A stretch of 64,000 bases of DNA, taken from contig CDRNST010000196.1 of NCBI GenBank assembly GCA_977016875.1, forward strand, positions 868,001 through 932,000. The letters are read 5' to 3'. The DNA comes from Pavona decussata. Taxonomy: Eukaryota. The notes beneath the pieces are model-generated. The model had not been told where the DNA came from and made no database searches. It saw only the letters and a program-made list of their open reading frames with translations. Of this stretch, positions 8,395 through 19,684 are shown in pieces; position 1 is the first letter of the stretch, and every line of letters begins with the position of its first letter. Both the position numbers and the translations under genes were made by a program.

Positions 8395-8714
8395 CTAGTG
8401 TGTCCGTCTCTCCGGGCACGAGGCTCTCTTCCTATACACACGAATATATGATTTCCCATTCTTGGACCACTCCAGTGCCGTCGAAAAGTTGTCCACGTAT
8501 AGAACGCGTTTTCTCCTGTCTTCTTTGCCAAGGATAATGTACACTCTGTTCGCCTTCAGATTGCTGCAACTGCAAGTGATTTCGTGGCCCCGTTTCTCCA
8601 GTAGTTGCCTGTTGTTAATCTTGACCTTTGATTGTTTGTATGTGCGGAGAACGCGAACACGCAAACGAGCCTGGCCATTCCTCATAATCTCATTTTCCAT
8701 CCGGGCTTTGATAA
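8395..8714 (-). CDS. WIF-NTR gene exon 6 (NTR domain body, stop)
   Basis: AG at 8716-8715; IKARMENE...TCSCSNLKANRVYIILG...LEW...SC, netrin/sFRP-type NTR motifs; TAG at 8397-8395. Confidence 0.9.
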
Positions 8715-17700: not shown

Positions 17701-19684
17701 GCCATTTCTTACGTTATTGATACAGTAGGACTCAGTTCGATTCACATAAATAACGTTGAGAACTGCCGAGAATTTCAGTCAGTTTTTGTTACCCTTTACT
17801 GCCCATTTGATCTGACCCTTCGGATTGATCAAATTTTACAAATTCGCTATCCTTTGGCATGTAACGAGCGTTAAAGTGAGCTTCCCTGTTTAGTTTCCCC
17901 TCCCGGGGGAGTTAAAGCTAAGGAATTAAGTACTCTTTGAGTAAGCCCTCTTATTGTTGTATGGCTGGGGTGGGAAGGGGGATGTTTGCTCCCACGCAAG
18001 GAATTAAAAGATTCGGCAGTCATCAAAACAATGTTTGTATTTTTTGTTTTGTTTCTATTTTTCATTCTCAGGTACTTCAAGTGGTTCGAAATCAGTATTA
18101 GCTATGTATTGCTCGTTCGTTACCAGAACTGTAAGAGGGCAGTCGGATTAAAAAGGAAAGATTTTCTAAACATTGAGTAAGACAACTGACATATTTGCAT
18201 GTTTAGATTTATTTCTGATTTTCTTGTGTTCTGAGTGAGTCAGTAACCCTTTTCAGATACGAAATTCAGTTCATTTGCTTTTAATTTAGTAATTCTGAAT
18301 GAAATGGATCCTCCCTTTGTTTGATAAGCGGAACCGATAATATAACACCAAAGCATTTATGTTTACATCTAAAGACCCCCAATATAATACGATATTAACC
18401 TCACCCACCAGTTGCGTGTCAGACGAAATATAAAGGAAGAGTCAAATGACCTTGCCAGGTGGGGAAGTGCAGTCACACTGCGCAGTCGACATTTCGTTCG
18501 CAAACTTGCAGTGGGAAATAAACAGCAGGCAAGAGAAAGGAATTAGATATTTGTGGTCTTATTGCATAATAAGAGCGATATTAAAATGGAATCAAGTCTA
18601 ATGGAGAGCTATTTGGCACTATCATTAAACTTTAAAATCATAGATTTGTGGCTCTATCCGATCAGTTGATTTGTGCCAAGTCGATCTTTGATTTACGAGA
18701 CAGCCAGAAAGGTCATGAAAAGTGTTACAAAGTGTAACCATTAACATGAAAGTAACTAAAAAGGACTTTTCTTGGTGCTGTGTAACACGGTGTGCTTGGA
18801 TGGTTTAAATGTTTGAGTCTGGAAAATCCTAAAATACAATTGGGCTACTGAGCATTGCTTTTAGGAAGCGTTGTCTGAAGCCCGGCTGTACAAGGTGGGT
18901 CAACCTTTTGTGCCTGTATGAAATCCTAAAATATTAATGTGGCTATTCGATGGAAGCTACTGATCATGAAAATGTCCTTTATTTTCTATCTCTTCGGAAT
19001 GAAAGGATTTAAGAATAAATCAGTTTCACCGCATTTCAAACTGATCAGCAAAGACCGGATGCCTGCGATGGCCACAAGCCGGATCACTGGTTGGTCTTGG
19101 AACGATAATAACTGTGAGCCATTTCAAGGCGATAACAGGGCTCATGTTGCTCTGAAGAGCTGACAAAAGCTGTGAATTGTCCCCAGAGTGATTGATGATG
19201 GTGACGACATGTGAATCAATCAGCCTGCTACGGTGGGACGTTGCAGTGTGTCTGCTAGCTCTTACGAGAAGGGTTAATTCCAGAATGCATGAAGAGCCAT
19301 TACGAAAGGCCACAGGAAAACAATCAAAATATCACGAATAACCTTGTCAAGTGTTTGTCTTAATTTTTTTTCCTTTGATAAGTATTAATTCAATATCGAC
19401 AAAATCAGGGTTTACCCGATAAAAGAAGGCTATCGCGCGGCAAAATCCTGATCTAAGACTCGGGTAACTCACTCATGATGCGCGGGAAGGGTTGATTTAT
19501 GCGCGACAGAAAACCTTGTTTACTCACACAAGTCTACAAAGAAACAACTCTACTTACCGTAAAGAAAGCGCGATACTTCTCTGGCCTCAAGGAAGACGTT
19601 GAGCTTTGCGGCGCATTTGCCGAGCAAGAGAGCGAAAACGAGGAGAAAAACTTCGAGAAAGTTTCCTGCCCCGGGGCCGGCCAT
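8395..19684 (-). CDS. Secreted WIF-domain + NTR(C345C)-domain protein, 318 aa; join(19684..19558,17006..16870,14716..14617,11413..11276,10090..9956,8714..8395)
   Basis: Six exons (127,137,100,138,135,320 nt = 957 nt), all GT-AG, with compatible intron phases 1,0,1,1,1 and no internal stops. Protein: MAGPGAGNFLEVFLLVFALLLGKCAAKLNVFLEAREVSRFLYDLNTNLYLVQDGTVAPILKTPILSSMIPPIEPYIKDLKFRFNATGMVQYTLSFQSSNETVMRHPTANIRLNGLVPRKTKGFRVRFPCTGKVSGETLLTINISFIEMTGSNIWGPLSLTLKRHCVADKEPWIYHPRFNSSGPEVTPLPPPQVCNKKCNKRHVMRRFCLSDFVIKARMENEIMRNGQARLRVRVLRTYKQSKVKINNRQLLEKRGHEITCSCSNLKANRVYIILGKEDRRKRVLYVDNFSTALEWSKNGKSYIRVYRKRASCPERRTH. Confidence 0.9.
9670..9891. mobile_element. MITE (PIF/Harbinger-like) in WIF-NTR intron 5
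   Basis: TIRs AGGTGCGTTCGATTGACCCTATTCCGGAATAGGAATA / TATTCTTATTCCGGAATAAAGTCAATCGTACGCAACCT. Confidence 0.7.
9956..10090 (-). CDS. WIF-NTR gene exon 5 (Pro-rich linker + NTR Cys1-3)
   Basis: KEPWIYHPRFNSSGPEVTPLPPPQVCNKKCNKRHVMRRFCLSDF; AG at 10092-10091, GTAAGT donor at 9955. Confidence 0.88.
10209..10295. repeat. Degenerate (CAT)n microsatellite
   Basis: Interrupted CAT/CAA/TAT triplet run. Confidence 0.8.
11276..11413 (-). CDS. WIF-NTR gene exon 4 (WIF C-terminal part, both Cys)
   Basis: FRVRFPCTGKVSGETLLTINISFIEMTGSNIWGPLSLTLKRHCVA; AG acceptor and GTAAG donor. Confidence 0.88.
13371..13789. repeat. Long foldback inverted repeat (~205-bp arms, tiny loop) in WIF-NTR intron 3
   Basis: AATTCTCTAGCGGCTGTGATT...AATCAAAGCCTCTAGAGAATT at the centre (~13584); the arms pair outward to GTTTTGGT / ACCAAAAC. 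Confidence 0.8.
14182..14545. mobile_element. MITE (PIF/Harbinger-like)
   Basis: TTAAGGCCCGTTAACACG...GCGATTTT versus AAAATCGC...CTGTTGACGACCCTTTAA. Confidence 0.5.
14617..14716 (-). CDS. WIF-NTR gene exon 3
   Basis: VQYTLSFQSSNETVMRHPTANIRLNGLVPRKTK; polypyrimidine-AG acceptor, GTAGG donor. Confidence 0.88.
14975..15630. mobile_element. MITE(s), GCACTTTCCATTC-terminus family
   Basis: GCACTTTCCATTCAGCCAAAA at the left; inverted CCGAATGGAAAGTGCCC (~15427-15443) and TTTTGGCTAAAAGGAAAGTGCCC (~15607-15629). Confidence 0.55.
16870..17006 (-). CDS. WIF-NTR gene exon 2
   Basis: LNTNLYLVQDGTVAPILKTPILSSMIPPIEPYIKDLKFRFNATGM; AG acceptor, GTATGG donor. Confidence 0.88.
17282..17630. mobile_element. 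MITE with TACAC...GTGTA ends
   Basis: TACACTATTTTTTTTCATAAGAACG..GAGGCTGAG versus CTCAGCCTC...TTATAAAAAAAAAAGTGTA. Confidence 0.6.
19558..19684 (-). CDS. WIF-NTR gene exon 1 (signal peptide + first WIF strand)
   Basis: MAGPGAGNFLEVFLLVFALLLGKCAAKLNVFLEAREVSRFLY; GTAAGT donor at 19557. Confidence 0.87.

Follow-up and report, generated by a model that had tools for sequence, protein, structure and literature searches.

A six-exon coral gene predicted to encode a secreted WIF-NTR protein, its cnidarian family and a candidate role in Wnt signalling

The window analyzed here, i.e., a stretch of 64,000 nucleotides from the scleractinian coral Pavona decussata (positions 868,001 to 932,000 of contig CDRNST010000196.1), contains a gene on the minus strand (19684..8395) that comprises six exons with compatible phases, separated by canonical GT..AG introns. 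The coding parts of the six exons sum to 957 nt and represent 318 codons followed by a TAG stop codon; the number of exons and the predicted length of 318 amino acids (aa) are the same as those proposed in a first-pass annotation of this DNA. The features of the gene are as follows.

Exon 1, 19558..19684, minus strand: ATG start codon (19684), followed by a hydrophobic signal peptide and the first part of the WIF domain (KLNVFLEAREVSRFLY)
Exon 2, 16870..17006, minus strand: WIF domain, Pfam profile positions 15-51 (11.7 bits)
Exon 3, 14617..14716, minus strand: WIF domain, Pfam profile positions 56-87 (26.4 bits, E 6e-6)
Exon 4, 11276..11413, minus strand: last part of the WIF domain (Pfam profile positions 90-131, 18.9 bits), which includes FPCTGK and the two cysteines of the domain
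Exon 5, 9956..10090, minus strand: Pro-rich linker carrying an NSS sequon, followed by NTR cysteines 1-3 (C-x3-C ... C)
Exon 6, 8395..8714, minus strand: remainder of the NTR domain with CxC and the final Cys, Pfam NTR 40.8 bits, stop codon TAG at 8397-8395
Short 3' UTR, 8341..8394, minus strand: terminates at a genomic run of approx. 25 A

Exon 1, which ends in phase 1 at a GTAAGT donor, matched positions 4-40 of a profile of the cnidarian family described below (37 bits) and aligns to residues 1-42 of its orthologs. Exon 2 contains one N-glycosylation sequon (NAT), scored 77 bits against the same family profile and is 93-98% identical to ortholog residues 44-88, while exon 5 is approx. 80% identical to ortholog residues 170-213. 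The acceptor of exon 3 (14717/14716) is preceded by a long pyrimidine (T-rich) tract and recovers WIF profile positions 56-64; an alternative acceptor at 14692, which would yield a product of 310 aa that leaves WIF profile positions 52-64 unmatched, was rejected in favor of 14716. Overall, the exons of the window are collinear with orthologs of 318-320 aa, and this collinearity, together with the lengths of transcript contigs, is the basis for the exon 1-2 and exon 2-3 joints. A search of positions 8000-20000 against Rfam yielded no match.

The remaining joints were observed directly in assembled contigs, which were used here rather than raw reads and which come from runs whose label as RNA is a guess. 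The joints between exons 4 and 5 (10090|11276, i.e., the transition from WIF to NTR) and between exons 5 and 6 (8714|9956) were each found in 4 runs from 4 studies, and the joint between exons 3 and 4 (11412|14616) was found in 3 runs; all three coincide with the predicted GT..AG splice sites. Individual contigs, 956 and 1040 nt in length, run through exons 3-4-5-6. Transcript contigs stop near the end of the 3' UTR, with one contig reaching approx. 304 nt below position 8660. The first-pass annotation had treated the joint between exons 4 and 5 (11276/10090) as decisive, and its presence in the contigs of 4 runs bears that model out. Exon 6 is single-copy in the genome, which holds no other copy of it that might represent a retrocopy. 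If the contigs are taken to be of RNA origin, the locus is a single-copy, expressed scleractinian coral gene.

The use of contigs with a guessed RNA origin could still be taken to mean that an adjacent WIF gene and NTR gene were falsely merged, or that the contigs are chimeric. We consider this extremely improbable, as the same exon 4-5 joint, across a canonical intron, recurs in 4 runs from 4 studies and joins exons of compatible phase, as contigs of 1.1-1.5 kb from other species hold unbroken WIF+NTR reading frames, and as RefSeq models of equal length exist in many genera. Moreover, the NTR domain itself is divided between exons 5 and 6.

The predicted protein consists of a signal peptide, a WIF domain, a Pro-rich linker and a six-Cys NTR domain, with no further part. 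Searches were run exon by exon, with the orthologs P0029 and P0007 standing in for the full-length protein. Exons 2-4 matched the Pfam WIF profile (PF02019) in profile order, with exon 3 alone exceeding the cut-off of 25 bits, and the exons of the window scored a sum of 243 bits against the family WIF profile. Exon 6 scored well above the cut-off of the Pfam NTR profile (PF01759; 21.9 bits) with an E value of 2.2e-10. The WIF part contains two cysteines (in FPC and RHC), while the NTR domain, which starts at approx. residue 195 with C-x3-C and is thus preceded by approx. 165 residues of WIF and linker, contains six, three each in exons 5 and 6. Exon 6 is strongly basic (28 K+R vs. 9 D+E), as are exons 5 and 6 combined (36 K+R vs. 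12 D+E). No EGF, Frizzled CRD, transmembrane or kinase parts were found in the window protein, and Pfam searches of the exons and of the orthologs found neither EGF nor Frizzled domains. The protein is a predicted glycoprotein of two modules that would be secreted. The sequence motifs, the two-Cys WIF domain, the Pro-rich linker and the six-Cys NTR domain described in the first-pass annotation were all found, and its identification of the two domains was upheld by Pfam HMMs (on exons and orthologs) and by the folds of orthologs.

The fold of the WIF domain was assessed on P0029, the closest ortholog, in place of the joined window protein. The WIF part of its AF2 model (pLDDT 77-90) matched 2ygn with a TM score of 0.80 (by target) and an rmsd of 2.8 A, as well as 7me5 with a TM score of 0.77; the solved WIF domains of WIF-1 and Drl-2 represent the references for this comparison. 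These models indicate that the WIF domain has the Ig-like beta-sandwich fold of solved WIF domains. The linker and NTR domain were modeled poorly in the full-length ortholog (pLDDT 32-58), whereas the NTR domain refolded alone reached a pLDDT of 83 and a pTM of 0.77. In Foldseek searches, this NTR-only model matched the NTR domains of PCOLCE (1uap), C3/C4/C5, TIMP-1 and meteorin, and an ESM Atlas look-up with the NTR part returned generic NTR clusters only. The NTR module, as modeled, combines its six conserved cysteines with an OB-type fold that is flanked by helices.

Full-length orthologs of 305-327 aa, with both WIF and NTR scoring above the Pfam cut-offs, were found in Scleractinia, Actiniaria, Scyphozoa and Hydrozoa. 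Among orthologs from Stylophora, Sanderia, Aurelia, Clytia and Hydra, WIF scores ranged from 54 to 83 bits over profile positions 1-131 and NTR scores from 31 to 64 bits. In the family tree, which follows cnidarian phylogeny, Hydrozoa, Scyphozoa, Actiniaria and Scleractinia are recovered. Across more than 15 species, conservation of the WIF domain is strong, and neither its FPC motif nor its two cysteines vary; the six NTR cysteines are invariant in 18-22 sequences. The two domains are conserved equally well, and the stop after the NTR domain is conserved in orthologs. One further WIF match in the genome (G000:C60) represents a tandem repeat read through stop codons and was discarded as a false positive.

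Gene models of this family are present across Cnidaria in public databases (e.g., Nematostella LOC5510504 and Hydra LOC101240594), with both Pfam domains precomputed, and this one orthologous family bears the labels "Netrin-5", "RYK-like", "WIF1", "shifted-like" and "NvTIMPa". At NCBI, the orthologs of Acropora muricata and Clytia bear the automatic name "protein shifted-like"; one Stylophora model was automatically named "Netrin-5", and an old Nematostella model (XP_001630935) entered the literature as "NvTIMPa", a putative TIMP, among cnidarian TIMP homologs (PMC4860685). In the searchable literature, we found no description of the WIF+NTR architecture and no functional test of it; the matches were confined to auto-annotated "WIF1" entries in tables of coral gene expression and to LOC107339060, another Acropora gene. 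As database entries and the published NvTIMPa listing exist, the WIF-NTR family is already on record, though uncharacterised.

With regard to the NTR domain, the family profile matched the netrin-1 NTR (8snp) in the PDB with 50.6 bits (E 1e-12), and no sFRP-type chain was among the matches listed; a phmmer search of the PDB with exon 6 gave only a weak netrin-1 match. Compared to NTR domains of the same genome, the NTR scored 38.5 bits against netrin and 28 and 24 bits against two sFRP NTR exons; the true netrin gene of this genome (Laminin_N + NTR) is located at C214, and Fz+NTR gene pairs are located on C27. By these sequence scores, the family NTR is closest to the netrin NTR rather than to that of sFRPs. 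It also shares with the C-terminal domain of netrin-1 the C-x3-C...C...CxC...C pattern and a basic character, while the laminin-N and laminin-type EGF domains of netrin are not in the window protein. The sFRPs are likewise small secreted proteins in which a Wnt-binding module is followed by a basic NTR domain, an arrangement that the window protein would share given its predicted secretion and Wnt binding, but their Wnt-binding module is a Frizzled CRD instead of a WIF domain. The "sFRP-like design" put forward in the first-pass annotation is thus apt as an analogy only, as netrin NTRs gave the highest scores for this domain in the PDB as well as in the same genome.

This affinity to netrin, the automatic name of the Stylophora model and the equal conservation of NTR and WIF would fit a matrix or guidance protein that acts mainly through its NTR domain (by binding heparin, integrin or a receptor), with the WIF domain serving a role other than Wnt binding. 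We regard such a protein as distinctly unlikely, as the laminin-N and EGF parts of netrins are missing and as the strong conservation of the WIF domain, in which the FPC motif and the two cysteines do not vary, speaks for ligand binding by this domain itself.

TIMPs share the NTR (OB-like) fold, but they carry an N-terminal NTR with Cys-x-Cys at the mature N-terminus and a TIMP C-domain, neither of which occurs in the window protein. Weak matches to the Pfam TIMP profile (17-21 bits in most orthologs, with a cut-off of 23.1, and 24.6 bits in Aurelia) and a Foldseek match to TIMP-1 (TM approx. 0.56) accompany the filing of XP_001630935 as a TIMP; such matches are expected, as the NTR fold is shared. 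To inhibit, a TIMP needs its NTR at the very start of the mature protein, with Cys1 of the Cys-x-Cys motif free, whereas the family NTR follows the WIF domain and linker and has C-x3-C as its motif. A TIMP-type metalloproteinase inhibitor is therefore a very unlikely identity for this family, whose NTR shows its highest sequence affinity to netrin; the study that listed NvTIMPa itself set it aside for want of Cys-x-Cys (PMC4860685).

With regard to the WIF domain, the family profile matched human WIF-1 with 68 bits (E 5e-18) and Drl-2 with 45 bits in the PDB, and the family WIF domain thus scores nearer to WIF-1 than to Ryk, with an identity to human WIF-1 of only approx. 24%. At the one pocket position looked at, the family profile has a hydrophobic residue (Ile/Leu) aligned to Met77 of WIF-1. 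Like WIF-1 of vertebrates and Shifted of Drosophila, the window protein is predicted to be secreted, has an N-terminal WIF domain straight after the signal peptide and has a C-terminal part expected to bind glycosaminoglycans; unlike in these proteins, a single NTR domain stands in place of five EGF-like repeats and a hydrophobic tail. Its WIF domain is interrupted by introns at approx. Pfam positions 51/52 and 88/89, and the Ryk gene of the same genome has introns at the same places. Conversely, the transmembrane helix and (pseudo)kinase of Ryk/Derailed receptors are missing, Ryk with its kinase exons is a separate gene (G000:C436), and the WIF exons of that gene scored only 8-13 bits each against the WIF-NTR family profile.

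Overall, the best explanation of these data is that the gene encodes a secreted protein with a WIF domain and a netrin-like basic NTR domain that probably acts on Wnt and belongs to a cnidarian-wide family. The WIF domain would bind lipid-modified Wnt, as in WIF-1, and the basic NTR would fill the role of the WIF-1 EGF repeats or the sFRP NTR, i.e., binding to heparan sulfate or matrix. Tethered in this way, the complex of Wnt and WIF would be kept in the extracellular space, and the protein would sequester the ligand or influence how far it spreads along the oral-aboral axis. Modulation of Wnt or Hedgehog is suggested by domain homology. The data presented here show the gene structure, splicing, domain identity, folds, conservation and taxonomic range of the family, and from these we infer secretion, the ligand, heparin binding and the direction of any signalling effect.

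A WIF domain is no guarantee of Wnt specificity, as Shifted, the Drosophila ortholog of WIF-1, acts on Hedgehog and not on Wingless. A protein that works like Shifted, carrying or modulating Hedgehog or some other lipid-modified ligand, would fit the WIF fold and the WIF-1-like sequence affinity equally well, and the "protein shifted-like" names, which are automatic only, point the same way. The sequence holds nothing that separates the two ligands, whereas the WIF domains of vertebrate WIF-1 and of Ryk/Derailed bind Wnts (PMC7458405, PMC4967905), and we thus see action on a ligand other than Wnt as a minor possibility.

The WIF-NTR family may also be the cnidarian counterpart of bilaterian WIF-1/Shifted, a reading that we hold tentatively and at somewhat short of an even chance. 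A secreted WIF-domain Wnt antagonist would then have been present in the cnidarian-bilaterian ancestor, with the lineages differing in the tail that binds glycosaminoglycans (NTR vs. EGF repeats). A survey of early-branching animals reported WIF to be absent from Nematostella and probably a bilaterian novelty (PMC2959043); if the counterpart reading is true, this published view would be overturned, and an overlooked extracellular regulator would be added to cnidarian oral-aboral Wnt patterning. Recognition of the WIF-NTR family also corrects the database and literature labels that are now scattered over its members.

The primary axis of cnidarians is patterned by Wnt gradients, and the extracellular Wnt regulators known there are Dkk, sFRP, Notum and an astacin. 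Conserved and expressed in all of the major cnidarian classes, a WIF-domain protein that is secreted would fill a gap in this Wnt toolkit, and Nematostella, Hydra and Clytia represent systems in which the question can be tested directly. The family would also represent a natural experiment in module swapping, in which the Wnt-binding head of WIF-1 is combined with a different matrix-binding tail, and it would thus bear on how Wnt antagonists were assembled through exon shuffling.

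The WIF-NTR gene, which encodes a predicted secreted protein with a WIF and an NTR domain, was resolved into six exons (positions are those of the window; ranges after Pfam names are positions in the Pfam profile):

19684-19558, minus strand: exon 1, opening with a hydrophobic signal peptide
17006-16870, minus strand: exon 2, WIF 15-51 (11.7 bits)
14716-14617, minus strand: exon 3, WIF 56-87 (26.4 bits, alone above the 25-bit cut-off)
11413-11276, minus strand: exon 4, WIF 90-131 (18.9 bits), with both WIF cysteines
10090-9956, minus strand: exon 5, with three NTR cysteines
8714-8395, minus strand: exon 6, NTR 11-102 (40.8 bits; cut-off 21.9), with three NTR cysteines

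The coding sequence sums to 957 nt, i.e., 318 codons and a TAG stop; exon phases are compatible (0, 1, 0, 1, 1 and 1, respectively) and all introns are GT..AG with a pyrimidine tract before the AG. An exon 3 acceptor at 14692 was dropped, as the WIF match in a whole-genome Pfam scan runs upstream to 14716, where a T run leading into TAG makes a better acceptor; with 14716, the model reaches the same length as the six-exon, 318-aa model of the first-pass annotation, which had been made from the sequence alone. The protein has two cysteines in the WIF part and six in the NTR, and glycosylation sequons are present in exons 2, 3, 4 and 5. Elsewhere in the window, 43241-45835 (plus strand) carries two exons of a tektin gene (Pfam Tektin 1-113, 34.8 bits, and 132-260, 52.8 bits), and 56519-62872 (minus strand) carries a 1382-aa open exon and a 251-aa ORF, both glutamate/lysine-rich coiled-coil with sub-threshold Pfam matches (GAS, DUF7491); these ORFs account for the composition skew at 58-62 kb.

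Logan contigs from four runs representing four studies of the same organism were compared with the window over 8660-14659. The joints 8714|9956 and 10090|11276 were found in contigs of all four runs and the joint 11412|14616 in three of the four, each with CT..AC ends on the plus strand, equivalent to GT..AG on the gene strand. The joining of exon 4 to exon 5, on which the first-pass annotation had made its model depend, is thus observed. Moreover, single contigs of 956 and 1040 nt bear exons 6-5-4 (and, in run X2, exon 3), and the remainder of each has the length expected from exons 3, 2 and 1 alone. While the RNA label of these runs is a guess, the contigs are intron-free at the exact splice sites, as cDNA gives, and we infer that they are cDNA-derived; a retrocopy is not their source, since exon 6 is single-copy in the genome. 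The exon 1-2 and 2-3 junctions are predicted from collinearity with orthologs. Alongside these joints, it is extremely improbable that the gene is an annotation artefact.

Two further observations concern intron 5. In run X1, one contig passes from 10015, within exon 5, to 8903, in intron 5, with 26 letters between them left unmatched; an alternative splice form, a second allele or a chimera could account for this. At 9655-9860 there is a MITE-like dispersed repeat of approx. 190-200 bp with short terminal inverted repeats (1386 candidate copies at a first look at the genome; 40 scored copies were 88-95% identical), which accounts for the very deep contig coverage of this stretch in each of the four runs. 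At the 3' end, a genomic run of approx. 25 A is located at 8341-8365, 30 nt past the stop, and transcript contigs end about there; polyadenylation may truly take place here, or the run may have primed internally, which makes the length of the 3' UTR uncertain.

Domain searches were run per exon for the window gene, with full-length orthologs, retrieved with exon 6 as the query of an exhaustive HMMER search, as a whole-protein check. The six exon peptides align in order to ortholog residues 1-42, 44-88, 89-121, 123-167, 170-213 and 215-318 (71-98% identity; orthologs of 318-320 aa), and the residues between these stretches represent split codons. Pfam scores on orthologs were 54-83 bits for WIF, over the whole profile, and 31-64 bits for NTR, at positions (WIF approx. 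30-165, NTR approx. 195-310) in agreement with those initially predicted. In an AF2 model of P0029, the closest full-length ortholog (83-98% identical per exon in exons 2-6), the WIF part showed pLDDT 77-90 and matched the crystal structures of the human WIF-1 WIF domain (2ygn; TM 0.80 by target, rmsd 2.8 A) and Drosophila Drl-2 (7me5). The NTR was poor in the full model; folded alone with 22 sequences (pLDDT 83, pTM 0.77), it matched the NTR domains of PCOLCE1, complement C3/C4/C5, TIMP-1, agrin NtA and meteorin.

Both Pfam domains occur together in proteins of 305-327 aa from Scleractinia (Stylophora, Pocillopora, Oculina, Desmophyllum, Montipora, five Acropora species and four Porites species), Actiniaria (Nematostella, Exaiptasia, Actinia), Scyphozoa (Sanderia, Aurelia) and Hydrozoa (Clytia, Hydra), and several further contigs of 1.1-1.5 kb encode this architecture in an uninterrupted reading frame. 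All named matches were cnidarian, in a search that may miss divergent members elsewhere. In a maximum-likelihood tree of 18 members, Hydrozoa (with long branches), Scyphozoa, Actiniaria and Scleractinia each formed a clade, as expected if one gene had been inherited vertically since the cnidarian ancestor. Overall, these data confirm that the WIF-NTR architecture is real, expressed, single-copy in its own genome and conserved across Cnidaria.

Source names of the members conflict (uncharacterized, Netrin-5, Wnt inhibitory factor 1, protein shifted-like, inactive tyrosine-protein kinase RYK-like, NTR domain-containing), and the Clytia protein is titled "Cnidarian restricted protein" in UniRef. 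In the old Nematostella model XP_001630935 (EDO38872), WIF positions beyond approx. 53 are replaced by a short PYEDDV-type repeat; it is a mis-predicted model lacking most of the WIF domain, while the current model, LOC5510504, has a full one. Nematostella has been scored as lacking WIF, which was judged "probably a bilaterian novelty" (Pang et al. 2010; PMC2959043), and XP_001630935 has been taken as a putative TIMP, "NvTIMPa" (Nicosia et al. 2016; PMC4860685); papers using this model carry over its error. A TIMP-like protease inhibitor is a very unlikely reading of the family, as the NTR is internal and has no N-terminal Cys-x-Cys. Coral expression papers include auto-annotated "WNT inhibitory factor 1" genes with no consideration of architecture; PMC6505131 uses "WIF1" for a different locus. 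No description of the WIF-NTR combination or test of a member was found in the open-access literature covered. Both as a WIF-NTR protein and as a candidate Wnt regulator, the product appears to be undescribed, in line with the initial proposal, but gene models with both domains were already public, one misfiled as a TIMP.

A profile built from the WIF-NTR orthologs, compared with all PDB sequences, matched WIF-1 (68 bits, E 5e-18), Drl-2 (45 bits), the netrin-1 NTR (51 bits, E 1e-12) and, weakly, PCOLCE, C5 and TIMP-3; no sFRP-type chain was among the matches listed. Pfam WIF matches in the coral's own genome were confined to the WIF-NTR gene and a Ryk gene (C436:2942501-2966000; loci L003, L004, L009 and L010), where WIF exons are followed by kinase exons; a third match was a repeat artefact, and no canonical WIF+EGF gene was detected at exon-level sensitivity. 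The Ryk WIF exons score 8-13 bits each against the family WIF profile, compared to 37-77 bits for those of the WIF-NTR gene, while the two genes share the Pfam positions of the exon breaks within WIF (approx. 51/52 and 88/89). Against the family NTR profile, the nearest NTR in the genome, that of a netrin gene on C214 with a Laminin_N domain 12 kb upstream, scores 38.5 bits, and the two sFRP NTR exons, both on C27, reach 28 and 24 bits. By these scores, the head is WIF-1-like and the tail netrin-like. The proposed sFRP-like design thus stands as architecture but not as descent, to judge from sequence. For the majority of NTR matches in the genome, the match begins at Pfam position 9-10, just as it does in the WIF-NTR gene, suggesting that an intron position within the module is shared. 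NTR-encoding exons also occur in clusters (four at C19:2086177-2219478, three at C239:2265208-2277172), more than 20 Frizzled-CRD matches form a tandem array of exons or genes within approx. 70 kb (C436:6333324-6401563), with smaller arrays on C229, C188, C130 and C293, and three proteins of 1291-1733 aa (P0016, P0017, P0019) with 6-8 separate stretches like the NTR exon may be multi-NTR proteins.

We rate the WIF-NTR product as a predicted secreted WIF-domain protein in which an NTR replaces the EGF repeats. Basic character and heparin binding are known for the NTR domains of sFRP-1 and netrin, and exons 5 and 6 together encode 36 Lys/Arg versus 12 Asp/Glu. A carrier of Hedgehog or another lipid ligand, like Shifted, is an unlikely reading, and a mainly NTR-driven role in matrix or guidance is less likely still. 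The function that we somewhat favor, taken as a whole, is that the WIF head would capture Wnt in its palmitoleoylated form and the NTR tail, being strongly basic, would anchor the resulting complex to matrix or to heparan sulfate proteoglycans, such that the protein would sequester Wnt or set its range.
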